DNA from: Octopus bimaculoides
Lineage: Eukaryota
Assembly (NCBI RefSeq): GCF_001194135.2
Contig: NC_068983.1
Location: 72,799,039 to 72,863,038, forward strand
Reading direction: 5' to 3'
DNA length: 64,000 bases
Shown here: positions 11,001 to 59,048 of the stretch, one piece after another
Position numbering within the stretch: position 1 is the stretch's first letter
How the letters are laid out: each line of letters begins with the position of its first letter
Position numbers and translations under genes: made by a program
The notes under the pieces: generated by a model
What the model saw: only the letters and a program-made list of their open reading frames with translations
Database searches by the model: none
What the model was told of the DNA's origin: nothing

Positions 11001-13620
11001 TGTTCAGTATTTTTTTTATAATGGATATTTTAATTTTTTCTACAGAAACTTGTTGCAAAATATTCTTTTTTAATTTGTTTTGAAATTTCTTCTGATTTTA
11101 ACCTTTTTATTTTCAGCCTTGAAAAATTTCTTAAGATCTGTGTTATTAGATTTGTTCCATGCTCAGTCGGATCCACTGGCTCTTTGTTCTTTTGTGCTCA
11201 ACAAAAATATCAAAGACCTCTGGTGGATGAATAAAAGAATTGTTAATTATATCAGATCGATCTTACCAGACACAAAAGTAAGTAACAGTTAGATTTCAAT
11301 ATTGTTTCAAAGCCTGTTTCTGTACCTAAATTTTAATCCTTCTTAAATCAATCATATAATTCATATTTTCAGTTGAAGATAAAAACCGATCCTGTTGACC
11401 TTGAAACTGCTGAAACAGAAACATTTTCAGATTTGTTTAAAACATTCTACCGAAATTNNNNNNNNNNNNNNNNNNNNNNNNNNNNNNNNNNNNNNNNNNN
11501 NNNNNNNNNNNNNNNNNNNNNNNNNNNNNNNNNNNNNNNNNNNNNNNNNNNNNNNNNNNNNNNNNNNNNNNNNNNNNNNNNNNNNNNNNNNNNNNNNNNN
11601 NNNNNNNNNNNNNNNNNNNNNNNNNNNNNNNNNNNNNNNNNNNNNNNNNNNNNNNNNNNNNNNNNNNNNNNNNNNNNNNNNNNNNNNNNNNNNNNNNNNN
11701 NNNNNNNNNNNNNNNNNNNNNNNNNNNNNNNNNNNNNNNNNNNNNNNNNNNNNNNNNNNNNNNNNNNNNNNNNNNNNNNNNNNNNNNNNNNNNNNNNNNN
11801 NNNNNNNNNNNNNNNNNNNNNNNNNNNNNNNNNNNNNNNNNNNNNNNNNNNNNNNNNNNNNNNNNNNNNNNNNNNNNNNNNNNNNNNNNNNNNNNNNNNN
11901 NNNNNNNNNNNNNNNNNNNNNNNNNNNNNNNNNNNNNNNNNNNNNNNNNNNNNNNNNNNNNATTATAGACTGCAGAAAAATGAAACTTATTATTTAACTA
12001 TGGTGTTTAATTTTGAATTTTTTTTCATTTTTACAGGGTACTGAAGTTTTACCTGATGCCAGAAAAACTTTAGAACTTTATTTCAAAATTATAAAGAAAA
12101 TATTAAATCATTTATTTGAGGAACTTTCAAAGGATTCCTCTGTAAATCCTTTAGAACAGTTTGCTCTGAAAGATTTTGAAATTTTTCAAATGCAGAAGAC
12201 TCCAGTAGGAGACCTCTTGAAGCAAGTCCTTGATATTCTCTCATCTCAAAGTTCTTTGCTGTATTGGTTTTTCTTTCTTGATAAAAATTCCTTAGAATCT
12301 AAATGCACCAGTGAAACTTACAGTTTTATCAAGAATCTTGTTACTGATGAATTAGTTCAGATATTTTGTCTTTTATCTAAGGTATCCAGTAAGAAAAAAA
12401 AGATCCTTCCAGAAGTTTATAGCCTGAAAATACTTCAGTCTCTAAATAACTTATGTCAGCAGTCCAAGAAAAAAGGAGTTATTAAAGCAGATGTTTTTAA
12501 AAATATAAGCAACCTTGTTGATACTCTTGATTTTATTACCATCCAAAAAATTATTACTATTTTTGTTCAATCCCCAAAGAATAGTGTAATTTATGAAGAT
12601 AGTTTGAATATTTCTGGTGAAACTTTAGTGAAGTTACTGAATCATTTATTAACAAATAATAAAAATATGGACTTAGAAATAACAAATGTAAATATTATTT
12701 TTCATCTCCTGAAATCCTCTAAACTGTTGATGGGACTCTTTACAAGATTACTTCTTTTCAAACCATATTACTGTTTAGTGTGCTCTGCCAAAACATTTAA
12801 ATATTTCCTCACTATGGAACCTCCAGATCATTTAAACCTGGTTCAGATTTTGATGAAATTTAATCCAAATTTAGATCAGGTTTTTGTTGACTGGATTCTG
12901 GAAGATGGCTTGACTAAGGACTGTTTAGAAACATATCTTGAAGTGTGTATTTGTTGGTGCCAATTGCAGAATGTACCACTTGAAGGTTTGTGGATTTCTT
13001 GAATATATTAACCTTAATCTTTTATCTAATGAAACATTTTTTTAAATAAGTAAAGTATTTATTAACTTCAATCTTTAACAGTATTTACTTCCAATCTTTG
13101 TTGTTGTTTTTTTAGACAAATTTTAGTTTTTACTTTTTACTGCCTTCCCAATATGTACTTCAGGAGACATCAATAGAGTCACCACTTCGGTTTTTTTTTT
13201 TTTTTCTTGTGACTTTTATGTGAAATTAATAGCTCTCTATCTATTTAATTTGAAGATTGTAAGTTGGCAAGTGGAAAACACCCAATATGCTTTTAAGTGT
13301 ATATTTACATAAGAAAATCAATTTCAAAACAATAGCTGTTCATGGTTTTCAGTGTAGTTGCTAGTATTAATTTGTTTAATTTTCCATGTTACAGGTGACA
13401 AAATAGTATGTCTCAAGAAAATCACTAAGATTTACCGTAAATATCTGTTTAAATGGATGAACCAACTGGGAACAACTGATCCAGAGGATAGTTCTCACAA
13501 TACCAAATGCTATAAACTTTTACAAGAATTTACTCGATTACATGTTTCTGGTATGTGTTTTATCTCTTTTTCTTTTCTTTGAAGACTTCATTTAAAAAAA
13601 GAACACGCACACGCACGCGT

Positions 13621-13651: not shown

Positions 13652-15181
13652 GATTATCTACATTCAGAAAAAAATTGAAGCTAACAAAATGCTTATAAAG
13701 TTAAGCAGGATTGCCTACAGACCATACACTTGCAAATTCAAACTTTACAACTTAAGCCAAGACAGTATTTTGTGTCTCTAAGCAAAGCATTTGCTTACTC
13801 CAGTTTATCTTACTGATTTGCTATTTTATGATTGAGTAGTTAGTTGTATGAAGGATATCCAGCTGTAACAATTGGTCAAACACAGAACCCATCTATTTTC
13901 CTAAACAAGCATGGAAAGATGAAAGTCCACAAGTGTGTGTGTGCATGCATTCGTGCACTCATGTCTACACTTTTACTGGTGTCAGTCATTAGATTGCAGC
14001 CATGCTTTAATCATATTGATCTCTATTTGTCAAACCACTTGGAACATACACATCAGTACCTTATGTGTGTTTGTATTCATTGGTTTTAATGAACGGGAAA
14101 AAAGTATTCAGCATAGTATTGAGTGGAGTGTACTTTTCGTTTCCATATATATATAAAAAATTAACAGAATGAGATAAAAATCCAAGGTAAATAGGTCTTA
14201 CAGCTGTTTCCAGGATATATTATATATATACCTTCATCAGAGATGGTGTAAGAAGATGGTTAAACAATAGTTAATCTAGATAAGATATGAAATAGAGAGT
14301 GGAGTGGAGGAATGAAAATAGACATGAGATATGCAGGGATATTGTATCTTTAGTTCCAAAATATATACATGTAAAACACCCACTACACTCTCGGAGTGGT
14401 TGGTGTTAGGAAGGGCATCCAGCTGTAGAAACTCTGCCAGATCAGATTGGAGCGTGGTGTAGCCATCTGGTTTCACCAGTCCTCTGTCAAATCGTCCAAC
14501 CCATGCTAGCATGGAAAGCGGACGTTAAACGATGATGATGATGATGATGATAAATATATATATATATATATATATACACATACATGTGTATATATATATA
14601 TATATATATACATTATATATATATATATATATATCATCATCATCATCGTTTAATGTCTGCTTTCCATGCTAGCATGGGTTGGACGATTTGACTGAGGACT
14701 GGTGAACCGGATGGCTGCACCAGGCTCCAATCTGATCTGGCAGAGTTTCTACAGCTGTGTGCTTTTATGTGCCACCGGCACAAGCACCTGTCTGGCGGTA
14801 CTGGCAACAGCCACGCTCAAATGGTGTTGTTACGTGCCAGCTGCACAGGAGTCAGTCCAGCGGCACTGGCAACGTCCTCGCTCGAATGTTTTGTTCACAT
14901 GCCACCGGCACAAGTGCCAGTAAGGCGATGCTGGTAATGATCATGCTCAAATGGTGCTTTTTACGTGCCACCGGCACGGAAGCCAGACCGCTGCTCTGGC
15001 AGTGATTCTCGTTCAGATGGTGCTGTTAGCGCTCCACTGGCACGAGTGCCAGTCATCAAATTTGGTTCAGTTACGATTTCACTTGTCCCAACAGGTCATC
15101 GCAAGCAGAGCTTACTGTCCAATGAAGGAAGGTTGGCATGGGTGCCAGTCGTCGAATTTGGTTCTATATATATATATACAC

Positions 15182-26500: not shown

Positions 26501-27858
26501 GGACTAGTCTTCATAGGCTTCATTAGTGAACTAAAGGGTTAGATAAATTGCATTGTGGTATTTCTTATAACTCTTTTATTTTCTGAGTCTGAATGTTACC
26601 AGGATCAACTTTGTCTTTCATCTTCATAGGGTCAATAAAATGATGTACAAATCAAGTCCTGGAAATCATTTTGACTTCCTCCTTACCTTAAATTTGTGGC
26701 CTTGTGCCTATGTTAAATATATTATAGTTGTTAATAATTTTATTTTTCAGCCCTCCACAATTCTTCCTATGGACAAACTACAGTTGTTATCTACTTGTTA
26801 TGATCCTAGTTTTCTTCTCCCGGTGTTCAGCTGCATATTGGCACCAGGTATTTTATTTTTATTTTTCTATTTTAACATTCTCTTTTTTTTTTTTTATATA
26901 TAAAAAGCAGCAAAATTGATTGCTCTTTGTACTGTTGTTGATGTTTGCCTAATGTCAGCCCCACTTAAAGCAGACCTTATGATCAAAGGCATTTCTGTCA
27001 TACCCATCCTGTCTTTTTGCATATTAGGGACTACAATGTCCAATGCATCCTTTTTTGCCATTCTCAAGCACAGTAGAATATGCTTTAAGGGATATTTATT
27101 TTGCTATATATAGTAAGTTGAGCAACTGCATGGAGAGTCTTGTGTTGGCTTGTTTCTATTGTAGTAATGTAATGTGTGTGCTTATGCAAACATATTACTT
27201 CTACTATACACTCCTGTTCAAGGTTTGGGTTAAGTGCAACACTACAAGATGGTATGAAAGTGGGTGATATAAGTTCATCAGATGGTACACAACTTGCTNN
27301 NNNNNNNNGGTTAAGTGCAACACTACAAGATGGTATGAAAGTGGGTGATATAAGTTCATCAGATGGTACACAACTTGCTATTTCAGAGAAACAAGCTATC
27401 ATAATAATAGTAGAAGAGACAGGAGTAAGCAGCATGTTGGTGGACTAGTCTTCATAGGCTTCATTAGTGAACTAAAGGGTTTATACAGTTTGAACATATA
27501 TACTCTTGGTGATAAATTCAAAGTTCTAGGCTACCCTGCTTAGCCAAACAGTACTGGCTTCATTCTGCCATCCAGTCAAGTAAACACCAACAAAAATTAT
27601 CTGTGTTCACTCAGCCTATTAGGAAAAGCATCCCCAGGCTCCCTTTAATCACATCTTACCATCTTATAACAGGCAGGAGGTATTGCATAAATGTGTGTAG
27701 GCTTATATATATTATACTTGAAAATAAGACAGGATTGTCATGGTTCTTCTTCCCAAAATTGAATTTTATATACACACACATTGTAAAGGGAAAGAATCTC
27801 TACTCTCTCAGAAAAATCAATAAATAAAAAAAGATGAATTATGTTAAATTCTATTATA

Positions 27859-27896
<38 letters not shown>

Positions 27897-30800
27897 TTTC
27901 ATTTCTCAGAAAACCAACTGGAATGTCTCGTCTTCATTGAGAAAAATTGCTTCAATTTTTGTGTCATTGCCTTGAGTTGCTATGACGATGACTTGCGTGC
28001 AGCTGCATACCATGCACTTTTTCACTTCAAAGGTCATTTGATTAGCAACACTCAATTTTATCTACGGGACCAATTTCTTTATGTGCTGAGATTCCTAAAG
28101 AACAGCATGGTCAAAGACAATGCCAGAATCCCTTTTGTAACAAGTCTGTATTTAGTCAGAGTTTGCCAAGTTGTACTAAATAAAGGTAGAGATTTAAACA
28201 TTTTATTTCTATTTTTAATCTCCTTTGGATTTTGTTTCTTTATAAGGTGTGTTTGTTGTTTAACCCTGCTTAACTTTGTATTAAGACTTATGATGAAAAG
28301 CATTCCAGCCATGATCCACTCATCTTTTTATATACTTGAAATACTACATTGCCATGATCAAAGGCATTCTGGCCATGGCCATCAAGTTTTTTTTTGTTTT
28401 ATTTTTCTGTAGGCATCTAGGACTACATTATCAACATTATTTAGGATGTACTTCCTTTTCATTGAATATGATGTGGATGAGATTTCTATTTTAAGCAACC
28501 ATGTAGACATTCTATCACTGGTTCATTGCATGTATTTTTCAGTGAATTTTTTTTGTTATATCAACTTTTGTTTTAGGCGGATATGAAATTTATATAAAAT
28601 GCAAAATATCTGAATGATTAAAACCTCAGACAAGTGGCTGGAAATGAAAAGATTATTTTTGAATCTTGATAAATTTTCATCATTGATACAGCTCTTGTCA
28701 TGTACTTTCTCATTTAGACCTAAATACATAACAGGAATCTATCTAAGAACCAACAGTGGTATTGGTTTGTCAGCTGCCCTCCCAAAAATAGTTTGTATTT
28801 AAGACAAGCTAACAAGGAAGCCCCTACTTGTTCCCACAATCTGCTAGAAATAACATCAAAAGACCTCGTTCATAATTTATCTCATGGCCATGTTGAAAGG
28901 AAAAGAACATCAACAAACACAAGGTTCAAAGATGTTAAGCCACTAAATTGAGTTCTCAGTGTATCTTCAACTGTTAGCTAGGCAAAGACAAAGTATATCT
29001 GAAACAATAAATATGTGTGTTGCACCCTTTTATTTGCCTGATTACCTATGTATCATTGGCCTGCTCAGAGTTAACTTGAGCCAACAGCAACATTTTAAAG
29101 GCATATGTTTATCATAGACGTAAAACGCATGTTTATAACATCTATGTAAATTTAGAAAATTTTGGAAATTAGAATTCATTTCATTGTACATTGTATATTT
29201 TTATCACAATTGATTAAAATTTGCAAGCATATAAGAAATAAAGAGGCAAGAGGAGAGTAACATATTAATAGTGGTTTTCATTTTTCTTTCTTCTATTACA
29301 GGTCATGACCTTTATTTTTCTATTATTGGTTTACTTATGGTGAAGCCTTTCTTTGATCTATATACAGTGCCAGAATTTTCCCAGATGTTTAATTGTTCCT
29401 CACTTATGGTTAGTGCATATAATTTTTTTTTGTTTTTTTGTTTTTCATGTTCTATCCCCATCTTATTCTCACTGTGTATCTATCTTTCCATTTCATACAT
29501 ACACTGAGCCTATCATTTACATTAGAATTTGATTTATTAATTCCTTGTAAAGTACATCCTCTTGGTTAAACCACAGCACTCTTATATTCACAACATTCTA
29601 CCATCACCTTTTTGCACTGTTAGTAATCAGTCCCTTTACCCCTGGTCACTTGGAATTAACATCCATCATTCTCTCTTACCACCATCCACCTCTACTATTG
29701 TCTGCCTTTCTCTCACTGGCAATCATGTAGCTACCACCATTGCCTCTATTCCATTATTACCTGCTATTACTCTCTATTTCATTAGTCCTTCCTCTACCAT
29801 CTTCTCACTCTAATTATTTTGTTTCTCTTATCATGAACTTGCTTCTTTCACCATTTCACCATAATTCATCTGCTCTCATCATGCTGTCCTTGATTCATCC
29901 TCTTGATAATGTTGCTTTGAATAAATGAAGATAACCTGACGTAGTGAGAACTCATTAGTTTTGTAGAGCACAAGGCAACCTAAGTGTTTTTGGTGTCACA
30001 ATAAAGTGGGTACACCTAGTATACACTGTAAAACAGTTGATGAATGAGCAGACAACATACAGTAAAGAGAACTCTTTAATCCTGCTGAAGACATGACTTT
30101 TTTAGTGCTTGTACCACAATAAAATCCAGGTGTTAAGAAGAGCATCTAGCTGTAGACATCTTGCCAGACATTGAAGTTTATGAGCAAAATGTGGTTTTCC
30201 AATCTGTCTAGGAGAGTAGTCCCATAATCACTCTAAATGAGAACTGATTTAAAAAATGGCAATCCATCCTACACATGACAGCATAGTAAGCAGACAGAAA
30301 AACAACATTGAACAAAAGGCCATTTAAATATATATATATATATATATATATATAAACATGACTGTGTATTCTATTTAGATATTTTTCAATCTTACATATT
30401 TGAGGAGATAACATAATCTAATTTTACTTTCCAGCATTACAGAGAAAGAAAATGGATGCTCTGTCTACTTCGTGATGGTCTTCGAGGAACGACGGAACAT
30501 AAAATATATCAAAAATTTAATGTGTTCAAGATCATCATGTCTTATGCTAATTCTTCGTTATGTAACAGAGGAATTCAGGTTAGAATTTATTTTGTTTTTT
30601 CACTGATTAAGATTGAACTTGTATCATGAAAGAGCTAAAATACAAGTCCACCTCTTTCATGATTGTATTTCTACAGTAACATTGTATATGAATGTCTGTC
30701 AGTTCATTTTCAGTTTATCAAAAATTTAGAGAGTCTTAGTGAAAAAAAAAAACATTTGCATTTTACTTTACTTTATTAAATATGTTAAACTGGTGTTTGG

Positions 30801-33800
30801 AATATAACTTAACATAGATCCTTACATAAATGTATAACTGTGTGTGTGTGTGTGTCTTTGTCCCCTACCACAGCCTGACAACCAGTATTTGTTTATTTAC
30901 ATCCCTGTAACTTAGCAGTTTGACAAAAAAGACCAATAGAATAAGTACTAGTACTTAAAAAGGAGTACTAGGATTGAATTGCTTGACTAAATCCTTCAAG
31001 GCAGTAGCCCCAGCATGGCAGCAATCCAAAAACTGAAACAAGTAAGAAATTAAAGGAAAAAAATTTTACCTGCTGAAGTATTTCATTAACATATTTTTGT
31101 TGAAGCTTTAATTTAAATTTGAACAATTGAATACAAGCAGTTTAGGGCAAATGTTCAAACTGGCTAGATTCAGCCTCTCACACCTACTTTTCAATGTCAT
31201 TCTAAAAATAATCATATCACTGAAATCTCAAAGGTACAAGATAAAACCTGATTAATTCAAATCAATGCAAATAAATAAGCATTACATTTGACAGAGTAAT
31301 CTGAATGCTAAGGGGTTAAATGCATTTAGGGCTTACAAAACTTTTACTTTTATTTATTGCAGGAAATGGTGTTACGTATACTAATGCAGGCCTGTACAGA
31401 AAAGACAGCTGCTGTGATGACACGTGAATACAGCATCCTAACTTGGATTAATTCATTCATTTCTAACGTGTACGTTTTTAAATACTTTGAATTAATGTTA
31501 TTGATTTGTGTGTGATTACTTTGATTCCCCATGCTGATTCTGCCTGAGGATCACATAAAGGGTATATGTATCTAGAATACTTAACTACTTATATGTTAAT
31601 TCAAGACCAATAAATTACTTACATGTGGATACTACAATATTACATGACCAATAAATTACATGTTTTTAAGTTATGAAACAATTTGTTGTGATATTAGAAT
31701 TTTCTTATTGTTAAAATTTCATTAAACACTTTCTCTATCATTTATGACTTTATATATATATATATATACATATATGAAATTATGATCACTTAACATCTTT
31801 TATCTCATTTAATAAACCCTGTTTCACTCTGTTTTAATACATGTTGTTAGTAACCATAGGTTTGAACCCTTGGGCAGGAATGGTAAGGGACAAATTCCGT
31901 TGCAATTACTATGGGGTAGTTGGTGTTAGGCATCCAGCCATAAAGATCATGCCAAAATAGACACAGAAGTCTGTAGCCTTCTGCTTAGCCAGCTCCTTTC
32001 AAACTGCCCAACCCATGCCAGCATGGACGGTAGAGGTTAAACGGTGCTGATGATGATGATACATATATGGTAATGGGTAAAGACTCCTTTTGGTCACGAA
32101 TGACCATGGTCTTGCATCTAAAAAAGTTCCCCTTCACGGCACTAGCCTGAGCAAGGTTGTTTGTGGAAGATACCAAGCTGTATTGGCCTTTGCCTTTNNN
32201 NNNNNNNNNNNNNNNNNNNNNNNNNNNNNNNNNNNNNNNNNNNNNNNNNNNNNNNNNNNNNNNNNNNNNNNNNNNNNNNNNNNNNNNNNNNNNNNNNNNN
32301 NNNNNNNNNNNNNNNNNNNNNNNNNNNNNNNNNNNNNNNNNNNNNNNNNNNNNNNNNNNNNNNNNNNNNNNNNNNNNNNNNNNNNNNNNNNNNNNNNNNN
32401 NNNNNNNNNNNNNNNNNNNNNNNNNNNNNNNNNNNNNNNNNNNNNNNNNNNNNNNNNNNNNNNNNNNNNNNNNNNNNNNNNNNNNNNNNNNNNNNNNNNN
32501 NGACTCCTTTTGGTCACGAATGACCATGGTCTTGCATCTAAAAAAGTTCCCCTGAGCAAGGTTGTTTGTGGAAGATACCAAGCTGTATTGGCCTTTGCCT
32601 TTCCATTGGACAGCATTGGTGATATGAAGAGGGGAGACTGGTATGCTTAGGCGATGCTAGTCTTCCACAAACAACCTTGCTCAGGCTAGTGCCTTGAAGG
32701 GGAACTTTTTTAGATGCAAGACCATGGTCATTCGTGACCAAAAGGAGTCTTTACCCATTACCATATATGTATCATCATCATCAGCACCGTTTAACCTCTA
32801 CCTTCCATGCTGGCATGGGTTGGGNNNNNNNNNNNNNNNNNNNNNNNNNNNNNNNNNNNNNNNNNNNNNNNNNNNNNNNNNNNNNNNNNNNNNNNNNNNN
32901 NNNNNNNNNNNNNNNNNNNNNNNNNNNNNNNNNNNNNNNNNNNNNNNNNNNNNNNNNNNNNNNNNNNNNNNNNNNNNNNNNNNNNNNNNNNNNNNNNNNN
33001 NNNNNNNNNNNNNNNNNNNNNNNNNNNNNNNNNNNNNNNNNNNNNNNNNNNNNNNNNNNNNNNNATGATAGAGAAAGTGTTAAATGAAATTTTAACAATA
33101 AGAAAATTCTAATATCACAACAAATTGTTTCATAACTTAAAAACATGTAATTTATTGGTCATGTAATATTGTAGTATCCACATGTAAGTAATTTATTGGT
33201 CTTGAATTAACATATAAGTAGTTAAGTATTCTAGATACATATACCCTGAATGAATTGGAGCAATGTGAAATAAAGTGTCTTGTTCGAGAACACAACGCAC
33301 ATGTATAGTCACACATACACTTCTATTCACTTGTTTTTAATTTCATCTTTTGTATGTTTAACATTGTTATTTACTTTTTTCGTAGGGATCCTCATTCACA
33401 GTTGACAGTTCTCATCACAGAATTGGTAGACAAGATCTGGCATGCTCTTCAGCAGAAGAACAAATCTCAGAGTGACAACAAAAACTTCACATTGCCAAAG
33501 CCATTTTTTACTGAAATGCAGATCTTATTATTAAATCTATTGGATCATTTCAGGTAGTTATTATTGCATGCATGAATAAATGTGAAGAGAGAAAGACACA
33601 ACAAATTTAAGGGTAGCAGTTCTGATATGGTAGATTGTGTGAAATGTTTAATGCAATGTCCGACACAGTGTTGTAGGAAAGATGAGTGGGGATGCGAGAA
33701 AATGTGCAGCTACCTATTTTAGAGAAATTGATGCTAGTATGATGATGATATAGAAAGCAGGGTGAGGGCACAGTCTATAAGATAGTAGTTGAGGTGTGTT

Positions 33801-36800
33801 GGTGATTGAATTTTTGTCAATCACTCAAATGGCATCTTTGGAGGTAAGGGTTATTCAGCCTAGATTTGTGAGAAAAAACAACAGCACCATTGCATGGATA
33901 TGAGTAATACTCCACTGTGGGTTATAACTGGACTTACAGAAGCTTAGATATTCATTTTAAAGTTGAACTATTTCCTGAATCAAAAGTGGAATCCCAGTCT
34001 TTGTGTTATGTAGCTTTGACAATGTTATATATATATATATATATATATGAGATTGCCATGAAGGACAATCAAATTTTTTAAAAGAAGGCATTTATGGTGA
34101 CCTTGAGAGTTTTAGTTATGTGTTGTTCATGAGTAAAAAGAGTGAAATTCAAGATTGTTTCTCTCATATGTGTAGTTCAGTAATTTCAATCTTTGTGATT
34201 CTGGACATAAACAAAATTAAAACTACCAGCACATTTTCTATAAAAAAAAGTTTTAAAGATAGTTTGTTTCGAAGTTAAAATTTTNNNNNNNNNNNNNNNN
34301 NNNNNNNNNNNNNNNNNNNNNNNNNNNNNNNNNNNNNNNNNNNNNNNNNNNNNNNNNNNNNNNNNNNNNNNNNNNNNNNNNNNNNNNNNNNNNNNNNNNN
34401 NNNNNNNNNNNNNNNNNNNNNNNNNNNNNNNNNNNNNNNNNNNNNNNNNNNNNNNNNNNNNNNNNNNNNNNNNNNNNNNNNNNNNNNNNNNNNNNNNNNN
34501 NNNNGACAACACAAATTACTGGGTAAATAGTATCAACTAACCCTTCCTCTCAAAATTGCTGGCTTTGTGTCTAAATTAGAAACAATCACACTTTAGAATA
34601 ACATTAATGGATGTTTGGGTTTGTTTGTTTGTTTTTTTTCCAAGAGAACTCAATCATTTGTATGGCTTTTATAAAAGCTTAAAAGTTTGACATATGTAGA
34701 CACCCCTTGTGGAGCACCATTTCAGAATCACTGATGTAGTAATTGATTCTTTGTGCTGATGGAAGAGGCAGCCTTATGTTTCTAATGAAAGATGGTCTTT
34801 ATTCATAAATACAGTGTATGTCTAGCATGAAGTATTTAGGTTGCAGATGAGTAAAGAGGAGCTAAGTGTAGTATCTCCATTGGAATGTGTGTTGTTGGAA
34901 ATGACAGTAAATCATTGCTCTTAATGTACTAAAAGAATGGTGTGCAAAACATTACTGAACCTTGGCGTTCATGAAGGTTCATAGAATGGGAGACATAGTG
35001 AGATACTTGTCAGAGTACAGCAGTCTGACAGCAACTTCTAAGAAATGAGTGATTCTGCTACCAGAAACAGACGTGTGTGTGTGTGTACATCCATATTATT
35101 GCTAATACTGTCACATTGCCAAAGACTATGTTTGGATTTACTTTCACTACAGTAAGATCTAGTAGAGTAAATGCATTTTTAAGAAAACAGCATATATAAT
35201 ACCACAGGTATTGTGAAATATCCTCACTCAAGTCTTATCGTTTTACTTAAGCTTTTTCTGTGCTTGCCAGGGTCTTACATCTTGCCATCTGTTGTAGTCC
35301 TTCATCATCTGGCAAACACACAACAGAAAATAACTGGTCGATTTATGTAGACAAATAGCATTTGTTTTTGGTATGGATTTCATAGCTAGAGGCCTTTCCC
35401 ATTACCAACCACTTTACTGTGTGAACTGGATGCATTTTGTTATGCCACTGGCACGAGAAAAGTTGTCTCCAGCAAGATGAAAGTGTTCCCTTTACTCTGA
35501 GTTGTCTTCAGCTATTGTTAAGTGGTATTAACACCCTATAAATTAAGGTAACCAATAATCTATTTAGAAGACAATGATGATAATTTTCAGAAACATTAAA
35601 TTTTTAAAGATTGTTTTCATAACTACAAGTTATCAAAAATGAATACATATATGAAATCTATTTTTCTCTTTAATCCAGAGAAGGGAGTGCTGAGACAGCA
35701 ATGAAAATATTTTTGCCACTATTCAGTTCAGTTATGGAACACAAGAAAAGGATACAATCACAAGGTATTTTTTTACATCTTCGTTAAATTGCAATACAAC
35801 ATATGTAAGCTATTACCCTTTAATTACGGCAACAATACTAATGAGTGTGTGTGTGTGTGAAGGTGCGTGGCTTTGAGGTTAGGACATTCAGATCACAATC
35901 ATAAAGTTGTGAGTTCTGTTCCCGGCAGCACAACACTATATTTCACATTGCTCTTGTCTACTCAGCTAGCAAAAATGAGTTATACCTGTAATTCAAAGGG
36001 TCAGCCTTGTCACATTCTGTTTCATGGGTATGTGTCAGTGGAGAACTCAGCCACTTGTATGTTAATTTCACAAGCAAGCTGTTCCATTGATCAGATCATC
36101 TGGTACACTCTCTGTCATCTGACACAGTGCCAAAGGAAGATATATATATATTCATGTGCAACAAAGGAGACAGATTTTCTCAAATGCTCAGAAGGATCTC
36201 AAGAGGTAATAGAAAACTTCTGTTATCTGGATGACCTAATTAATAGTGGAGGAGGATGTTCTAATAGTATAGTAGCTGGAGTAAGAACAGGTTGGACAAA
36301 AGTTCAGTGAGCTGTTACCTCTGTTGACAACAAATGGTTTCTCTCTCAGAGTGAAAGATAGATTGTGTGATGCTTGTATGGATGCTACAATACTATATGA
36401 TTGTGAGACATGAGCCCTGAATGTAGAGAAATTGTGAAAACTAGAAAGAAATAAAGCTAACATGCTTTACTGAATATGCAACATCATTGTGCATAATCAA
36501 CAAAATCGAAATATGTTGAAAGAAAATGGAGCAATATGAGAGAAAACTGCAATAGCATGGGTATGTGATGCATATGGATACAGCAACTATATAAAGAAGT
36601 ACTAATTGTTAAATATTGATGGAAGTTGTGGAAGAAGGCATGGGGGCTTCACAGTGGAGGTGACAAAGGACCATAATGTGTAGCAGTACATGGTGCTCAA
36701 AAAGGGCTGCCCATTGCAGCAAAAGTGAGGTTCTGAACGCATACTGTGTATACAAACTGAGTCTCTCACCCACAAGCCTCCCTCTTCTCCCTACCACTTA

Positions 36801-38954
36801 TCCTTCCATGTCTCTCCTAATTACTGCAGTATTCTGATGCTGTAATTAAATGAGAGCAGAATCATGTATTCTATCATCCTTTTCTGTGTTACCAGTTATC
36901 TCTTCCACTCTCTGGAACCACTTTCTTTGACAGCCCTCTTTCATTCTTAGCATTGTACTTCTCCAGTCACATTTTACCATCAACCATCTCTTCACACTTC
37001 TTCATCATTTGCTACATTCATCCTCACCCTACTTCTATCACACTCTTGCAGCCTCTATCCACTTCCCCTTCTTGATCTTTTGTCCATAAACAGGACACTT
37101 TCTACTTATAACTCACCTTACTTTGTGACTAAGAATGTGGTGTTAAGGATGCATAGAATCCTTGTTGTGTTTATATTGTGGTAGATGTGAGTGCTGAACT
37201 CAACAAGAAATAAATTTTATGAGTTTCAATTCCAGCATAAGTATACACACCCCACTTATCAACAGCTGAGTGTATGTTATCAGGTTTAGATTAAACTGAG
37301 CACATGTAAACATACATAACAATTAATGACAATCAGAAACAACTGGTTGAAGCTGGTTTACAAGAAAGGAGTGGGTGGGGTATGTAAAGAAATACTTTGA
37401 ATGTTTCTAAACCTCACTCCCAAGTACTAATATCTCATCTAAAAAAATTTAGACATTCTTACTCCACCAAGAATGTCAGCCATGTTCTTGTGAATAAATA
37501 GTTTTAAAAAAATAAAGATAACTTATTTTTAATAAATCCAGAGGGATTGCTTTAATTTACTTGGATTTCATATTGTGTTTTTTTTTTATGCTGTCAGTAA
37601 GACTGAATAAAAATGATTAATGCAAATAGAATACCACAAATCCCAACTGCCATGTGACACTTCATACAAACATACACTTAATGACATGTATGCAGTGTGG
37701 CCCTATATCAGGTAGAAGCATAGTCCTTCACTGCTGGATTAATATGTTAATTCCGTACATGTCTAATATAGCAGAGCTGACTGGAGCTATTCAATATTAA
37801 CATTTAAATAGATTATTTCTATTAAAAAAGAGTCAACAAGTTTTACAACTTTCCTATAAAAAAAACAATGATAATTTTTATTTGCAACAAGAGGTGCAGC
37901 AACTGTTGATTCAAGAGACTGATGGCATGATCATAAGTCTTACTAAAGCTATTGTGGTTTTCTGGGCAAATTCACTTGACTGGAGAAAAATAGGTTGCAC
38001 TTTTACTTCACTATTTAGTGATAGGTCACAAGGAAGGTAACCAAGTGTAAATACAATTTCAAGCTAGCATTAAAAAAATACTGTAAAAAAATATTATTTC
38101 AGAGCTTTATTTTGTCTTATTTTTCAGAGGAAAGAACAACAAATATAGTATCATCAACAGACAAAAATCATGAAGACAAGAATCCAAGTCAAGATTTTGG
38201 CTTAATCACACAAAGAGACATTCTTTTATTACTATTTCAAAGTCGACAACTTATGCAATCTACTCATATTTTTCATAGAGCTCTGGACATTCTAAAACTC
38301 AAGGGATACAATTGTAGTTATCTGGCAGATGTTCCTAAGAAAAAGATGGTGTCATCAACTCAAGAAACTTCTGAAGAAACTGATATGGATGATTCCTCAT
38401 CTGTTATCTCTGAAACGGATGAGTTCAATAATATGAATGATGTTTCAGAAGCAGAACAAATTGAACTGACTAATTCCCTTATCAATATTTGTTTAGCTTG
38501 GAAGCCGTCTGTACCTACTACTGAGAATGCTAAATTAGTTTTGACTCAAACATTACAGTTAGTCATTTTGTGGCTAAGTCATGAGGTTTGCCACAAAGGG
38601 ACCATTATTTTGTTACACGATGTATTATTATGGATTGACAGAATTCTTGAAAATTGCAATTCAATCATTCCTGATCTTTTGACTGGAGAAAATTCCACAA
38701 TTTCTGTAAGAAGCTTCCCTGAAAATCTATTAGTATTTCATGGAGGAATTATTTCTATGAAAGTACCTGACAACATTAACCAGATGGAAAGCTGTCTGGA
38801 ATTAGATTCTGCATCTAATGAAACTAAACAGAAATCTCAGAAATTACTTGCTAAGCTTTGCAAAATTGTTACAGGTTTTGAAATTCAACACATTATTGAT
38901 CAACCTGTTAATTTTTATCCATTTTTAGACAAAGTTGTAAATATAACCATTTAA
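1763..38954 (+). CDS. URB1: Multi-exon gene, 5'-partial: URB1/NPA1 nucleolar pre-ribosomal-associated protein 1 (60S biogenesis factor)
   Basis: 23 GT-AG exons that splice in frame (one N gap, one unresolved phase). Peptides recall URB1 in collinear order: QIFCLYQSLMP, TGFF..EILIWL, SNPYTHID, LPFSPLI, DLFHAQSDPLALC, HSEFMNIMM, GAYGATLSLEDQKLL, LWG, YDPSFLLP, IALSCYDDDLRAAAYHAL, VPEFSQMFN, ERKWMLCLLRDGLR, YSILTWI. The C-terminal ones fit the NopRA1 domain. Recognised from memory; no search run. Confidence 0.93.
3114..3400 (+). CDS. URB1: URB1 exon (DKVDPLEHVALSMQIFCLYQSLMP...LQWAKS), phase 1 to 0
   Basis: polyT-cag acceptor, gtaaga donor; inside ORF 3023..3499. Confidence 0.88.
4662..4760 (+). 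CDS. URB1: URB1 exon (NDLKQAHIHIILDLLVTIQDPQLLIINKSLVCQ), phase 0 to 0
   Basis: ttttctag acceptor, CAG|gtaaat donor; 33 open codons. Confidence 0.85.
5025..5283 (+). CDS. URB1: URB1 exon (LLYKTGFFAGLKNEILIWLDW...SNPYTHIDQ...DAVLE), phase 0 to 1
   Basis: polyT-ccag acceptor, gtaagt donor; inside ORF 4977..5318. Confidence 0.9.
5311..5523. mobile_element. piggyBac-like MITE, opposite orientation
   Basis: TTAA|CCTTATAGCATT...AATGCTAAAGGG|TTAT; interior is the reverse complement of the 54338 copy. Confidence 0.65.
6426..6498 (+). CDS. URB1: URB1 exon (NFNEAELNEAESETVVADSNKNSI), phase 1 to 2
   Basis: ttaatag acceptor, CAG|gtaaat donor; phases fit both neighbours. Confidence 0.75.
8633..8703 (+). 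CDS. URB1: URB1 exon (RLPFSPLIIIASDLTKDEPASKNS), phase 2 to 1
   Basis: atctag acceptor, CTG|gtaact donor; PFS motif; phases fit. Confidence 0.82.
9174..10075 (-). mobile_element. tRNA-headed SINE family 1 with an internal (TA)n/(CA)n tract; carries a nested insert and an N gap
   Basis: Near-identical to copies at 44742, 48042 and 56031; head GGAGTGGCTGTGTGGTAAG...GGTTCAGTCCC. Confidence 0.8.
11117..11277 (+). CDS. URB1: URB1 exon (ALKNFLRSVLLDLFHAQSDPLALC...LPDTK), phase 1 to 0
   Basis: tttcag acceptor, gtaagt donor; inside ORF 11080..11292. Confidence 0.9.
11373..11457 (+). CDS. URB1: URB1 exon start (LKIKTDPVDLETAETETFSDLFKTFYRN), running into an N gap
   Basis: ttttcag acceptor after a 95-bp intron; phase 0; 3' end hidden in gap 11458-11961. 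Confidence 0.75.
11458..11961. other. Assembly gap interrupting URB1 coding sequence (other gaps: 1136-1485, 8199-8479, 9489-9913, 15224-15657, 24808-24819, 27299-27308, 32198-32501, 32825-33064, 34285-34504, 56207-56241, 58174-58183)
   Basis: Runs of N. Confidence 0.99.
12037..12985 (+). CDS. URB1: URB1 large internal exon (GTEVLPDARK...NVPLE), 949 nt, phase 0 to 1
   Basis: ttttacag acceptor, GAAG|gtttgt donor; longest ungapped ORF in the window (12013..13002); Leu-rich helical composition. Confidence 0.9.
13395..13550 (+). CDS. URB1: URB1 exon (GDKIVCLKKITKIYRKYLFKW...RLHVS), phase 1 to 1
   Basis: gttacag acceptor, CTG|gtatgt donor; inside ORF 13358..13582. Confidence 0.85.
14194..14243 (-). 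ncRNA. Minimal type I hammerhead-ribozyme motif (Penelope-like terminal-repeat type)
   Basis: Minus strand reads TCT-CTGATGA-AGGTATATATATAATATATCCT-G-GAAAC-AGCT-GTA-AGA: core boxes, stem II AGG/CCT, palindromic ACAGCTGT stem III, GUA site, 3-bp stem I. Confidence 0.55.
14377..14551 (+). mobile_element. RTE 3'-tail fragment ending in (GAT)n
   Basis: Matches 63465-63636. Confidence 0.78.
14633..15165 (-). mobile_element. RTE 3'UTR fragment with tandem units and (GAT)n tail
   Basis: Reverse-complement match to 63220-63636 and 14377-14551; similar tails at 5540-5800 (-), 16890-17105 (+), 24663-24807 (-). Confidence 0.75.
16011..16089 (+). CDS. Candidate URB1 exon (ALFQDKGPTSSFVLLSCHVIPRFSFL), phase 1 to 2
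   Basis: gatttctag acceptor, gttagt donor, open frame; supported by phase logic only. Confidence 0.35.
16542..16570 (+). CDS. Candidate 29-nt URB1 micro-exon (KIITPELVFK), phase 2 to 1
   Basis: tttcttctctatcag acceptor, gtaagg donor; open only in the phase that follows 16011-16089. Confidence 0.35.
16666..16872. mobile_element. piggyBac-like MITE, diverged
   Basis: CCCATTAGCAT...AATGCTAGAG|TTAA; interior matches the 54338 copy. Confidence 0.6.
17272..17470 (-). mobile_element. SINE family 1, diverged partial copy
   Basis: Matches the head and central part of the family-1 copies. Confidence 0.65.
17721..17767 (+). CDS. Candidate URB1 exon (IFCNCSYHIWLKCLT), phase 1 to 0
   Basis: atatag acceptor, ACG|gttaag donor; would repair the phase 1/0 mismatch; alternative boundaries exist (17740 start, or 17774-17840). 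Confidence 0.3.
18219..18286 (+). CDS. URB1: URB1 exon (NVSTEQCDVLKGIWSSFIQSSL), phase 0 to 2
   Basis: ttttctag acceptor, AAG|gtaagt donor; open in only one frame. Confidence 0.85.
18730..19010 (+). mobile_element. RTE-clade LINE reverse-transcriptase remnant
   Basis: Decayed WLVRAIQAIYKD...FSEEFCVQVGV...LYVNDLV, corresponding to the QG..LSP and YADD region; stops and frameshifts. Confidence 0.6.
19525..19700 (+). CDS. URB1: URB1 exon (RFCFTNPVLLQILVNVLP...HSEFMNIMMESDSGVTK), phase 2 to 1
   Basis: ttttcttacag acceptor, AAG|gtaaac donor; inside ORF 19445..19711. Confidence 0.88.
21701..21811 (+). CDS. URB1: URB1 exon (ELLLDIILLIMEMEPECCVEAHLNIFFGAYGATLSLE), phase 1 to 1
   Basis: ttgtttcag acceptor, GAAG|gttaaa donor; conserved GAYGATLS motif. 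Confidence 0.92.
23232..23295 (+). CDS. URB1: URB1 exon (DQKLLKIISLYEKNGINLNKF), phase 1 to 2
   Basis: ttttttcag acceptor, gtgagt donor; DQK-L..YE motif. Confidence 0.9.
23570..23752 (-). mobile_element. SINE family 2 copy
   Basis: Reverse complement of the 55023 copy (aaaggcaaagtcgacctcggcggaatttgaac). Confidence 0.75.
24494..24655 (+). mobile_element. SINE family 1 head/central part, abutting an RTE tail on the minus strand (24663-24807)
   Basis: gctgtgtggtaagaagtttgc...ggttcagtcccactg...gacggaaactgaaag-like. Confidence 0.7.
25251..25413 (+). CDS. URB1: URB1 exon (RPYLWGTKF...SVSNFPLERKLC), phase 2 to 0
   Basis: ttcttctag acceptor, gtaagt donor; LWG and FP motifs. Confidence 0.9.
26265..27481 (+). 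repeat. 276-bp direct repeat pair flanking a URB1 exon (26265-26540 and 27125-27481)
   Basis: No mismatch seen; second copy contains a 10-N gap with a 71-bp overlap. Confidence 0.8.
26751..26847 (+). CDS. URB1: URB1 exon (PSTILPMDKLQLLSTCYDPSFLLPVFSCILAP), phase 0 to 1
   Basis: tttttcag acceptor, CAG|gtattt donor; YDP.FLL motif at the start of NopRA1. Confidence 0.9.
27910..28185 (+). CDS. URB1: URB1 exon (ENQLECLVFIEKN...ALSCYDDDLRAAAYHAL...VCQVVLNK), phase 1 to 1
   Basis: polyT...ctcag acceptor, AAG|gtagat donor; NopRA1 core motif. Confidence 0.93.
29302..29408 (+). CDS. URB1: URB1 exon (GHDLYFSIIGLLMVKPFFDLYTVPEFSQMFNCSSLM), phase 1 to 0
   Basis: ttctattacag acceptor, ATG|gttagt donor. 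Confidence 0.9.
30435..30578 (+). CDS. URB1: URB1 exon (HYRERKWMLCLLRDGLRG...NSSLCNRGIQ), phase 0 to 0
   Basis: ctttccag acceptor, CAG|gttaga donor; ER.W.L.LL.DGLR motif. Confidence 0.92.
31363..31469 (+). CDS. URB1: URB1 exon (EMVLRILMQACTEKTAAVMTREYSILTWINSFISN), phase 0 to 2
   Basis: ttattgcag acceptor, gtacgt donor chosen by phase. Confidence 0.88.
31559..33247. repeat. Long near-perfect inverted duplication inside a URB1 intron
   Basis: 31559-31741 is the reverse complement of 33065-33247 (1 mismatch in 183); 32007-32170 is the reverse complement of 32661-32824 (2 in 164). Confidence 0.85.
33386..33553 (+). CDS. URB1: URB1 exon (DPHSQLTVLITELVDKIWHAL...LLNLLDHF), phase 2 to 2
   Basis: tttttcgtag acceptor, CAG|gtagtt donor; inside ORF 33354..33557. 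Confidence 0.87.
35679..35764 (+). CDS. URB1: URB1 exon (REGSAETAMKIFLPLFSSVMEHKKRIQSQ), phase 2 to 1
   Basis: ctctttaatccag acceptor, AAG|gtattt donor; phases fit both neighbours. Confidence 0.8.
36160..36620 (+). mobile_element. RTE-clade LINE ORF2 C-terminal remnant
   Basis: EVIENFCYLDDLINSGGGCSNSIVAGVRTGW...FSELLPLLTT...FSLRVK...ET*ALN; frameshifted. Confidence 0.75.
38128..38954 (+). CDS. URB1: Probable terminal URB1 exon (EERTTNIV...DKVVNITI*), 827 nt
   Basis: atttttcag acceptor in phase 1; 280-aa ORF ending TAA at 38954; ATTAAA about 25 bp downstream. Confidence 0.8.
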
Positions 38955-44741: not shown

Positions 44742-44934
44742 TACTCTTTACTTGTTTCAGTCTTTTGACTGCGGCCATGCTGGAGCACCGCCTTTAGTCG
44801 AGCAAATAGACCCCAGGACTTATTCTTTAGAAGCCTAGTACTTATTCTATCGGTCTCTTTTGCCGAACCGCTAAGTTATGGGGACATAAACACACCAGCA
44901 TCGGTTGTCAAGCGATGTTGGGGGACAAACACAT

Positions 44935-44973
<39 letters not shown>

Positions 44974-45133
44974 CACGACGGGCTTCTTTCAGTTTCTGTC
45001 TACCAAATCCACTCACAAGGCTTTGGTCGGCCCGAGGCTATAGTAGAAGACACTTGCCCAAGATGCCACGCAGTGGGACTGAACCTGGGACCATGTGGTT
45101 GGTAAGCAAGCTACTTACCACACAGCCACTCCT
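44742..45133 (-). mobile_element. SINE family 1, full-length copy
   Basis: Complete head, centre, microsatellite and tail; many CpGs retained, suggesting a young copy. Confidence 0.85.
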
Positions 45134-46695
45134 ATGCTAAGTTATATTACTAAATTTGTTTTCTGCCAGTGGCAGGTGATTTTTCTGCAAATCCTATTTG
45201 CTTTTCACTTTAAACCTTAATCAACAACAGATGTAAAAAAAAAAAGACAAAAGAAAGTAATTAAATTTTTTGTTTGATTTGTTAGCAGCAAGCTAAGTTT
45301 CTCTTTTTCCTCTTCATTTCTTTATTTCTTTCTTTTTCTCTCCCTCTGGTATTATTGTAAGATTTGTTTATGATTTGGGTTGGATGATGTTATGGTGATG
45401 AGAAATATTAATTGAAGTTGTCAATAGGTTGGGTAATAAGATCAAGTTAATTAAACAGCTGGCCATATCAACAGGAATGATTTTAATAAACCAATGAGAG
45501 AGCTGCTATATGATTACTTTGACCTGGTACAAATAGCAATCAGATTTCCTTTTGAATTACACCCTATCATCTTAAAAATAGTAGAACAGTTGTGACCACC
45601 TTGTCTTTCTCAGACATAGCTGAGTCTAAGACTATATTGGCCAATGCCACCTTCTTCTAAGATGATTTGAGAGAGATTTAGCTGCTATTTCCATCACATT
45701 GCACAGAGGCAATGTAGCAGTTCCCTTGCTTGTTCATCTCATCTCTGTTATAGAAGTCTTACTGGCTTTTGGTACTTTTCCATTCCAATACTGACAATAA
45801 TTATTTCTAAACTTGGTGCAAGGCCTGCATTTTTGAGGGGATAGAATTAGTCAGTTATAGACCCAGTACTCAACTGATACCCGATTGACCCCCAGAGGAA
45901 TGAAAAACAAAGTTAGCGTCAGCAGAATTTGAACTCAGAACATGGAGTAAGGAGAAATACTGCAGGGAATTTCTTTCCAATGCTCTAACAATTCTACAAA
46001 TCCTGTAATTTTCTTTACCTGTTTATTTATTTTATGATTCAATCAAATAAAGACAGACAGCACCTATGACTTTCTTTCAGATCTGATGAAAGGATGTGTA
46101 AGATATTCTTAAACTAGAATTCATGTATGAATGTGTGTAACTAACCAAAGTGCACACCACTAATGGAGTATTTTATTTGTTTATCTATTTATTACTGTTA
46201 TTTTCATATGCTAATCAGATTAGTAATTAGCTAAGCAACTTTCTTTTATATGGCTAGGCTTATTTTTTTTTTATCTTATTAATTGTTGATTGCTTTATTT
46301 GCAATTTATTTATTTCTGCTGCATTTTGATCTTGTTGCCTCAAAAACCATATCCTCTATTATCTCTGTTGTTGTAAAGTGTACAAAACTAAATCTTATTT
46401 AATTCTACTTATGGCATTGATGTTCTTGTATAGTACTGAGATAGTAATCATAACAGTGATGTCAGAGACGATCATGTTGCTCTTTGTTTTTATTTTTACT
46501 TTTCAGTGTGTCATTCATTGTCGTTCTATTTATAGTCAAATCCTGCCACGGTCAACTTGGCCTTTATAAACCCTTCCAGGGTTTATAAAGTAACAGTCAG
46601 TACTGGAGTCCATGGAATTAGCTGATTCCTTCCTTCAAAACTGCTCACCTTGTGCCTAAATCAAAAGCCTTTATTATTATTATTATTATTATTAA

Positions 46696-47883: not shown

Positions 47884-48041
47884 ATTTCTATTGTGGGTGA
47901 TCTGTGGTTTGTTTGCCAAAATTACTGATACTTGGCGTGTGCATGTATACTCTTTTTTTTTATTCTTTTACTTGTTTCAGTCATTTGACTGTGGCTATGC
48001 TGGAGCACCGCCTTTAGCATTTTCTTATGAAAATATTATTT

Positions 48042-48405
48042 GCTGTGTGGTAAGTAGCTTGCTTACCTACCACATGGTTCCAGGTTCAGTCCCACTGCGT
48101 GGCACCTTGGACAAGTGTCTTCTAATATAGCCGCGGGCTGACCAAAGCCTTGTGAGTGGATTTGGTACACGGAAACTGAAAGAAGCCCGCCGTATATATA
48201 TGTATATGTATATATGTGTTTGTCCCCCCCACATCGCTTAACAACCAATGCTGGTGTGTTTACGTCCCCGTAACTTAGTGGTTCGGCAAAAGGGACCGAT
48301 AGAATAAGTACTAGGCTTCCAAAGAATAAGTCCTGGGGTTGATTTGCTCAACTAAAGGCAGTGCTCCAGCATGGCCACAGTCAAATGACTGAAACAAGTA
48401 AAAGA
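48042..48405 (+). mobile_element. SINE family 1, full-length copy
   Basis: Reverse-complement match to 44742-45133. Confidence 0.85.
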
Positions 48406-58846: not shown

Positions 58847-58887
<41 letters not shown>

Positions 58888-58928
58888 TCACTGCTTGAAA
58901 TCAAACTCGGAATCTTGAGGTTAGTAGC
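58078..58928 (-). mobile_element. Inverted second copy of the composite element, interrupted in its (ATT)n by a 544-bp insert
   Basis: 58078-58303 is the reverse complement of the tail at about 59040-59190; 58884-58928 is the reverse complement of 58963-59007. Confidence 0.55.
58304..58847. mobile_element. Unclassified interspersed repeat inserted within an (ATT)n tract
   Basis: Sharp (ATT)n boundaries on both sides; higher GC; no convincing ORF. Confidence 0.45.
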
Positions 58929-58932
58929 TAAC

Positions 58933-59003
58933 GGGCATATGGCATAGTGGTTAAGAGTGCTGGCTACTAACCCCAAGATTCCAAGTTTGATTCCAGGCAG
59001 TGA

Positions 59004-59048
<45 letters not shown>

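Follow-up and report, generated by a model that had tools for sequence, protein, structure and literature searches.

A probable recent inverted duplication of host DNA in an intron of the octopus URB1 gene

An intron of Octopus bimaculoides, lying within the 64-kb stretch of DNA analysed here (the window), appears in the assembly as two long reverse-complementary arms broken by two runs of Ns. The locus raises the question of whether this palindrome exists in the genome and, if so, whether it is a mobile element, a functional structure or a rearranged piece of ordinary intron DNA. The most likely answer is that the inverted duplication is real but ordinary.

The two exons flanking the intron join in frame across it, and the intron is in phase 2. 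A composite of the exons matched the Pfam family NopRA1 (PF16201; E = 3.7e-19, 69.5 bits against a cut-off of 29.6) over residues 53-217, colinearly across the intron. Because the flanking exons join in frame and match NopRA1, the host gene is identified as URB1, as the initial annotation had proposed; its distances of 89 nt from donor to stem and 138 nt from stem to acceptor were likewise recovered. A homologous protein search gave no match for the 91 aa of the two flanking exons or for the 256-aa NopRA1 composite. A contig-collection search for four window ORFs (67 aa over the loop, 67 aa over the downstream exon, and 329 and 280 aa over large exons) found none present, and a metagenome scan with a 24-nt loop sequence returned 0 matches. 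The exons and the unique ends of the intron are as follows.

31365..31469, + strand: URB1 exon 5' of the intron; in-frame junction; part of the composite matching NopRA1
31470..31558, + strand: unique 5' part of the intron, 89 nt; donor GTACGT; no second copy in the window
33248..33385, + strand: unique 3' part of the intron, 138 nt; pyrimidine-rich tract and acceptor AG; only a weak match in the window, at 35908-35953 (46 nt, 80%)
33386..33555, + strand: URB1 exon 3' of the intron; in-frame junction; entered by the NopRA1 match (composite residues 199-217)

Between these ends, the assembly contains the following arm, loop and gap segments.

31559..32170, + strand: left arm, 612 nt, complete within contig 27309-32197; GC 34%
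31742..32006, + strand: left-arm segment whose mirror is unread, 265 nt; includes (TA)n (31751-31775) and the greater part of the retroposon tail
31880..32062, + strand: old copy of a dispersed retroposon tail, 5'-truncated and ending in (GAT)n, inside the left arm
32171..32197, + strand: start of the loop, 27 nt at the end of its contig; identical to 32576-32602 in the next contig
32198..32501, no strand: gap 1, 304 N; almost certainly spurious, the contigs on either side overlapping
32502..32602, + strand: redundant copy of 32082-32197 minus 15 nt; probably the other allele of the inner left arm and loop start
32603..32660, + strand: remainder of the loop, 58 nt, single copy; loop total 85 nt
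32661..32824, + strand: inner part of the right arm, 164 nt; ends inside the conserved core of the retroposon tail
32825..33064, no strand: gap 2, 240 N; real sequence is missing, ~265 nt being expected for a complete arm
33065..33247, + strand: outer part of the right arm, 183 nt; ends just before the expected start of the (TA)n mirror

The outer arms (31559-31741 and 33065-33247) are reverse complements over 183 nt with one mismatch, at 31724 (99.5%), and the inner arms (32007-32170 and 32661-32824) over 164 nt with two, at 32028 and 32137 (98.8%). These values reproduce exactly the coordinates and the 3 mismatches in 347 bp reported in the initial annotation. Chance pairing is excluded, since by our own arithmetic a 183-nt match with one mismatch at 35% GC has a p near 1e-100. 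Where the right arm is sequenced, its two pieces run colinearly with the left arm, and the 265-nt mirror of 31742-32006 falls in the gap at 32825-33064. The hairpin inside the central contig (32502-32800) gave a minimum free energy of -165.8 kcal/mol (z = -18). All three arm differences are transversions, and two of the three are C/A at a CG. Such an all-transversion spectrum is odd for true divergence and counts against a duplication; with n = 3, it could be sequencing or allele noise.

Comparison of the flanks of gap 1 revealed two 52-nt blocks of 100% identity (32082-32133 with 32502-32553, and 32146-32197 with 32551-32602). The copy 3' of the gap lacks 15 nt (32134-32148), with CCT at each border of the missing segment. 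Because both sides carry the same sequence apart from this 15-nt indel, the Ns of gap 1 are almost certainly not real, and the sequence appears to be continuous through the overlap. Merging of the duplicated ends gives the loop of ~85 bp that had been claimed; with gap 1 read as an overlap, the spacer is short relative to the reverse-complementary arms. The contigs were probably kept unmerged by a heterozygous 15-bp slippage deletion. Duplicated exact ends also occur at 3 of the 11 other gaps in the window (104 nt at 8199, 71 nt at 27299 and 42 nt at 58174). The window has 12 gaps in 64 kb, and the gap at 8199 is sized at 281 N despite its overlap, so that gap sizes can be wrong by ~400 nt. 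The estimate of 304 N for gap 1 also disagrees with the overlap by ~400 nt, an observation that counts against a duplication.

No direct overlap was found between the flanks of gap 2 (32825-33064). These flanks mirror left-arm positions 32007 and 31741, which places 265 nt, the mirror of 31742-32006, in the missing stretch. The left arm is assembled in full, and the right arm is read only 183 nt inward from the 3' flank and 164 nt outward from the loop. One sequenced right-arm piece terminates at (TA)n, the other at the conserved repeat core. The right arm was probably assembled only up to the point where reads had an anchor in unique sequence, with repeats halting the assembly. Walks that fail at an unresolved repeat have been described for one short-read assembler (PMC3158087), which may not be the assembler used here. 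The earlier proposal of arms of ~610 bp with 265 bp hidden stands in part: the mirror arithmetic does give 265 nt, but the whole length is an extrapolation, and the agreement between 240 N and 265 nt is weak evidence because gap estimates in this assembly err by ~400 nt. The 265 unread nt of the right arm count against a duplication. We predict arms of ~612 bp that are ~99% alike, the full length of the right arm being extrapolated over these nucleotides. The corrected intron would be about 1536 nt (89 + 612 arm + 85 loop + 612 arm + 138), of which the hairpin would take up 1309 nt. By this reconstruction, the URB1 intron is ~380 nt shorter than the assembly shows, and one of its two gaps is not a gap.

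Three independent contig junctions fit one palindrome: flank to left arm (27309-32197), left arm through loop to right arm (32502-32824), and right arm to flank (33065-34284). They come from a gap-rich short-read draft: of its 12 gaps in 64 kb, 4 are flanked by duplicated ends that were not merged, and gap sizes are off by ~400 nt. The palindrome could accordingly be an assembly artefact built from a single real arm, if the assembly graph folded back where a genuine short inverted repeat lies, if chimeric fold-back reads were assembled or if separately assembled haplotypes were joined in inverted orientation. Both joins inside the palindrome coincide with gaps, its centre (the loop-to-right-arm junction) is supported by a single 323-nt contig, and the 3 transversions and 15-nt indel could be allelic rather than paralogous. 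However, one arm cannot join both unique flanks by the same outer end, and two independent chimeric junctions would therefore be needed, one at the centre and one at an outer end. Library fold-back chimeras arise at scattered sites and at low depth, and should not reach the consensus. A second fold-back palindrome of the same build lies at 58076-59199; it is older, has diverged arms around a 34-nt loop and carries a 544-nt insertion in one of them, and its divergence suggests that such structures really occur in this genome. Taken together, we regard an artefact as unlikely.

Two further rearrangements of the same contigs were considered. A flipped contig is excluded because the exon order, with the NopRA1 match, orients both outer contigs, and the overlap, which includes 27 nt of the loop, orients the middle one. 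A heterozygous inversion would explain the outer junctions but not the loop-to-right-arm junction in contig 32502-32824, and was rejected; the same shortfall speaks against an inversion polymorphism as the source of an artefact.

We consider it probable that the locus is a real, recent and local inverted duplication of ordinary URB1 intron DNA, forming a quasi-palindrome with ~612-bp arms, ~99% identical, and an 85-bp spacer. Self-comparison of the window agreed with the claim of mosaic arms, put together from intron DNA, (TA)n and a retroposon tail, the family label 'RTE' aside. The tail (31880-32062), which is diverged and ends in (GAT)n, is 72-86% identical to copies near 3956, 5538, 14458, 14623, 16950, 24657 and 63546 of the window; the remaining arm segments are single copy within it. 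Degenerate ORFs that to us resemble LINE remnants, located at 61.8-63.0 kb and at 35.9-36.3 kb, gave no match in Pfam. Rfam found no family in the whole window, ARAGORN found no tRNA or tRNA-like head, and the locus contains no ORF longer than 67 aa free of Ns.

Because the retroposon tail inside the arms is only 72-86% identical to its other copies and the arms are ~99% alike, the arms were copied from each other. Two independent transposon insertions were rejected on the same comparison. A DNA-level rearrangement may have placed an inverted copy of the adjacent 612 bp at a distance of 85 bp, with replication template switching or break repair as candidate routes. Both junctions are blunt. 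Inspection by eye, in both copying directions, found no junction microhomology and no template-switch signature, and did not tell the original arm from the copy.

A different origin would be the insertion into the intron of a mobile element whose terminal inverted repeats are very long, such as a Foldback-like element or a long MITE. The termini are perfectly inverted (AGGGTATATGTATC...), and the locus is compact and lacks coding capacity; Foldback elements can be almost wholly arm. Against this, no target-site duplication of at least 3 nt was found at either boundary or within 8 nt of it, in line with the claim that there is none. We also found no transposase ORF and no arms built of subrepeats, the only subrepeat being a 22-nt motif that is present twice in the arms without a tandem array. 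Within the 64-kb window, the only sequence searched, there are no dispersed copies with the same termini, and no part of the arms recurs except the retroposon tail and (TA)n. An arm mosaic that includes an old degenerate retroposon copy is what is expected of host intron DNA, and the two outer arms run directly into different unique flanks, as had been noted. A mobile element is thus very improbable, and the initial annotation's preference for a fold-back duplication over a transposon with terminal inverted repeats fits better.

For a duplication of intron DNA, the main expected consequence is at the level of RNA. Both arms lie within one URB1 intron, between in-frame exons of the + strand, and hence in the same pre-mRNA. 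Because they share one pre-mRNA, the intron would be expected to fold co-transcriptionally into a near-perfect duplex of ~600 bp. This duplex would leave the donor, branch region and acceptor single-stranded and within ~230 nt of each other. In Drosophila, endo-siRNAs arise from long inverted repeats, and in yeast, splicing is helped by stems within introns. If selected for a function, the palindrome might act as a hairpin-RNA source of endogenous small RNAs, or its stem might shorten the intron and so promote or regulate the splicing of URB1. The stem does spare the splice sites, with 89 nt and 138 nt left free, and would cut the effective intron from ~1536 to ~230 nt. Several features argue against selection: an arm identity of 99% points to a very young structure, too recent for conservation to show; the arms are junk-like and have no similarity to exons within the window; Rfam finds nothing; the 15-nt indel suggests drift; and comparable inverted repeats are frequent in the window. 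We consider a selected function quite improbable, and the net effect on URB1 is most likely neutral or slight.

ADAR would be expected to hyper-edit the duplex promiscuously (A-to-I) and unwind it, after which it would decay along with the excised intron. Hyper-editing by ADAR falls mainly on near-perfect local inverted repeats (PMC5625713). The sequence criterion for an ADAR substrate was taken from the same work (Porath 2017: a reverse-oriented match of >95%, at least 40 bp long, within 2 kb), and the URB1 arms form such a match.

At the DNA level, the palindrome had been proposed to be a cruciform-prone fragile site. Inverted repeats in yeast break ~80% less often once the spacer reaches 9 bp (PMC8053094). 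The 85-bp spacer at URB1 weakens the proposal by this comparison, and cruciform extrusion should be rare here.

Octopus bimaculoides has been reported to be exceptionally rich in near-perfect local inverted repeats, which make up 0.44% of loci (PMC5625713). The window contains several, which cover 1.9% of its bases, compared with the 0.44% reported genome-wide for octopus. The class being this common, the case for the URB1 repeat as something unusual is weakened. The window also holds two short-loop palindromes, one young and one decayed, consisting largely of sequence that occurs nowhere else in it. It is conceivable, although we think it doubtful, that fold-back duplication of host DNA is a recurrent and still active mutational process in this genome. 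If it were, such duplications could, in addition to transposon pairs, contribute to the exceptional dsRNA load of cephalopod transcriptomes and to their hyper-editing. The young URB1 copy might still be polymorphic, offering a natural test of a 600-bp intronic dsRNA in an essential gene.

If the duplication is real, this intron of URB1, an essential gene for ribosome biogenesis, would form a dsRNA that is unusually long and clean, and the locus may be polymorphic. In an animal that edits its RNA heavily, it would provide a convenient single locus at which to test hyper-editing, how dsRNA is handled in the nucleus and how splicing responds to a stem that spans the intron. It would also indicate that inverted duplication of host DNA, besides transposon pairs, can generate ADAR substrates. 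For annotation, reads are expected to mis-map between the two arms of the intron.

Several known systems resemble this locus in part. Drosophila hpRNA loci, which give endo-siRNAs, are separate transcription units with arms derived from their target genes. They share with URB1 a long inverted duplication, a short loop and an origin by local duplication, whereas the URB1 arms are intron filler inside a host gene and match no exon in the window. On the assembly side, gap 1 and three other gaps of the window, with the same sequence on both sides, resemble the unmerged contig overlaps, or 'negative gaps', of the Meraculous paper (PMC3158087), but the URB1 copies differ by a 15-nt indel that probably blocked merging. 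Fragile quasi-palindromes, such as the yeast Alu quasi-palindromes (PMC8053094) and human PATRRs, likewise have long, AT-rich and nearly identical arms; PATRRs are essentially free of a spacer, in contrast to the 85 bp at URB1.

One self-palindromic repeat, the ~200-bp Harbinger-derived element of Xenopus tropicalis (PMC5625713), also folds within one locus through a short loop and needs no partner copy. That element belongs to a multi-copy transposon family, whereas the URB1 locus lacks a target-site duplication and other copies in the window. A further likeness is to ADAR-edited intronic inverted pairs, namely human inverted Alu and those of Octopus bimaculoides (Porath et al. 2017, PMC5625713), in which opposite copies >95% alike lie <2 kb apart in one non-coding part of a pre-mRNA. 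Those are two independent insertions of one repeat family, whereas the URB1 arms reproduce neighbouring host DNA that is mostly single copy. The URB1 arms are also far longer (~612 bp) and more alike (~99%) than typical pairs, with a short loop. On its own, the URB1 repeat is another case of a known class that is common in octopus.

The URB1 intron most likely contains a palindrome of two inverted arms of a predicted ~612 nt around an 85-nt loop, interrupted by two runs of N:

31365-31469, + strand, upstream exon
31470-33385, + strand, intron (GTACGT...AG)
31559-32170, left arm
32198-32501, gap 1 (304 N)
32661-33247, right arm, the inverted copy
32825-33064, gap 2 (240 N), inside the right arm
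33386-33555, + strand, downstream exon

The outer arms (31559-31741 versus 33065-33247) are reverse complements over 183 nt with one mismatch (31724), and the inner arms (32007-32170 versus 32661-32824) over 164 nt with two (32028, 32137), reproducing the coordinates and the three mismatches of the near-perfect arms described in the initial annotation. The two pairs are colinear; across gap 2 the mirrored coordinate drops from 32007 to 31741, the absent piece being the mirror of 31742-32006 (265 nt). GC content of the window is 35%, and chance cannot give arm matches so long in 64 kb.

The two exons join in frame over the intron. A composite of nearby + strand exons matched Pfam NopRA1 (PF16201, E = 3.7e-19, above the curated cut-off), and this match spans the exon junction, identifying the host gene as URB1, as had been proposed. 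Given the URB1 exon order, contigs 27309-32197 and 33065-34284 can have only one orientation; contig 32502-32824 is anchored by the stretch it shares with contig 27309-32197, 27 nt of the loop included. A misoriented contig as the source of the palindrome is ruled out by exon order and contig overlap. Two further stop-free + strand stretches (11998-12999, 334 aa; 38025-38951, 309 aa; lengths untrimmed) are presumably large URB1 exons; their trimmed versions (316 and 269 aa) had no Pfam match. Within the window, URB1 appears to span 3-39 kb or more.

With 12 runs of N, the window is a gap-rich draft assembly. The flanks of gap 1 are identical (32082-32133 = 32502-32553 and 32146-32197 = 32551-32602, both 100%), except that exactly 15 nt (32134-32148), with CCT on either side, are absent from the copy 3' of the gap. 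These 15 nt are found in both the left arm and the right arm (32683-32697), so the shorter version is derived; most simply, it would be a slippage allele. Merging gap 1, which is almost certainly spurious, gives a loop of 85 nt (32171-32197 + 32603-32660), bearing out the earlier suggestion of a loop of about 85 bp. Besides gap 1, exact duplicated ends were found at 3 of the other 11 gaps:

8199-8479 (281 N), exact repeat of 104 nt
27299-27308, exact repeat of 71 nt
58174-58183, exact repeat of 42 nt

By their end sequences, these are unmerged contig overlaps. The duplicated ends indicate that contigs which overlap were often left unmerged in this assembly, and that gap lengths can be off by ~400 nt. 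"Negative gaps", together with gap-closing walks failing at an unresolved repeat, are known for one short-read assembler, which may not be the one used here (PMC3158087). Comparison of the gap 2 flanks revealed no overlap, so sequence is truly missing there. If 265 nt are assigned to gap 2 and gap 1 is merged, the intron length comes to 89 + 612 + 85 + 612 + 138 = 1536 nt, versus 1916 nt as assembled.

A single palindrome is consistent with three contig-level junctions: left flank/arm, arm-loop-inverted arm (in the 323-nt contig) and inverted arm/right flank. Part of the 323-nt contig (32502-32800) folds as a hairpin (MFE -165.8 kcal/mol, z = -18 versus shuffles). The right arm is read for 183 nt inward of the unique flank and 164 nt outward of the unique loop, and the reading ends right before the (TA)n mirror and at a point inside a dispersed repeat where that repeat is most conserved. 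To us, this pattern of breaks is how a two-copy repeat usually looks, at its second copy, in a short-read assembly. An assembly artefact is unlikely, since the same end of a single-copy arm cannot adjoin both unique flanks; an inversion polymorphism would account for the outer junctions but not the centre, and a de Bruijn fold-back at a short inverted repeat for the centre but not the outer junction. Weak points of this case, which is drawn from the assembly, are the one small contig that carries the centre and the 265 nt of the right arm that are unseen. The arm differences are another: all three are transversions, C versus A at a CG dinucleotide in two cases, a spectrum unusual for true or neutral divergence, though n = 3. 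Either sequencing error of the damage type or allelic noise could account for them.

Just two parts of the arms recur elsewhere in the window, the (TA)n tract and 31916-32068; there is no second copy in it of the outer 187 nt, of 31776-31915 or 32063-32197, or of the loop. The segment 31916-32068 derives from a dispersed retroposon, whose tail it represents, with (GAT)n at its end; it shares 72-86% identity with copies at ~3956, 5538, 14458, 14623, 16950, 24657 and 63546, in agreement with the mosaic of intron DNA, (TA)n and retroposon tail described initially. We take this repeat to be octopod in look. Although this retroposon copy is old and diverged, its two versions in the arms are ~99% identical, so one arm must have been copied from the other as DNA, and two separate insertions were rejected as their source. 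As annotated, no target-site duplication was found at the arm boundaries (at least 3 nt, shifts of up to 8 nt allowed), and no microhomology was seen at either junction, whichever the direction of copying. The palindrome region contained no ORF longer than 67 aa, no Rfam family and no tRNA-like sequence. A Foldback- or MITE-type element is highly improbable given these results and the restriction of other arm copies in the window to the retroposon tail and (TA)n. A recent fold-back duplication of host DNA, as originally put forward, is supported to the extent that an assembly allows.

Elsewhere, degenerate + strand ORFs at 61790-62975, which in our view resemble a LINE remnant, lie ~500 nt upstream of a copy of the (GAT)n-tailed repeat (63440-63643). 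Pfam gave no match for these ORFs. The arrangement suggests that the repeat is the 3' tail of a putative LINE family.

A published criterion for inverted repeats asks for >95% identity over at least 40 bp, in inverted orientation and no more than 2 kb apart; in the window it picks out 1.9% of the non-N bases (1159 of 61176), at four non-microsatellite loci. The URB1-intron palindrome belongs to this known, locally common class, and is its longest and youngest example within the window. A second fold-back palindrome (58076-59199) has a 34-nt loop and arm segments 88-100% identical:

58076-58303 + 58848-58928, left arm, split by a 544-nt insertion in an (ATT)n tract
58963-59199, right arm, contiguous

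Neither this palindrome nor its insertion has a further copy in the window. Its divergence suggests that it is real and older, apparently the decayed product of a similar event, and in our view this makes a real palindrome in the URB1 intron more likely a priori; it also hints that fold-back duplication recurs in this genome. Three other inverted pairs were observed:

1-77 / 996-1072, 77 nt, 99% complementary, cut by the window start, no other window copy; its arms may reach past the window
14472-14564 / 14614-14706, (GAT)n-tailed retroposons, tail-to-tail, 91% complementary, 49 nt (TA)n-rich between; could also form dsRNA, as an ordinary pair of two insertions
44747-45135 / 48033-48402, another dispersed repeat family, 90-92% complementary, further copies near 9173, 30998, 56025 and 63844

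Computed folding gave -345 kcal/mol for the inner arms and loop as observed, and -1119 kcal/mol for the full 1309-nt model, in which 265 nt are imputed and hence paired by construction. The stem begins 89 nt past the donor and ends 138 nt before the acceptor, as first noted, leaving both flanks, the acceptor side pyrimidine-rich, outside it. In all Metazoa examined, the main targets of ADAR hyper-editing are long near-perfect intramolecular duplexes of nearby inverted copies, with editing at 10% or more of base pairs (mean 16%) in hyper-edited transcripts; Octopus bimaculoides showed the strongest signal, with near-perfect local inverted repeats at an exceptionally high fraction of loci, 4.4e-3 (PMC5625713). 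Most likely, the URB1-intron duplex would be hyper-edited in the nucleus and then decay with the intron, with a small effect on URB1. The stem may bridge the splice sites, and the putative hairpin may yield small RNAs.

At the DNA level, a hairpin on single-stranded DNA in replication is possible. The further proposal of a cruciform-prone fragile site is weakened by comparison with yeast Alu inverted repeats, in which a spacer of 9 bp is enough to bring breaks down by ~80% (PMC8053094), whereas the spacer of the URB1-intron palindrome is 85 bp.
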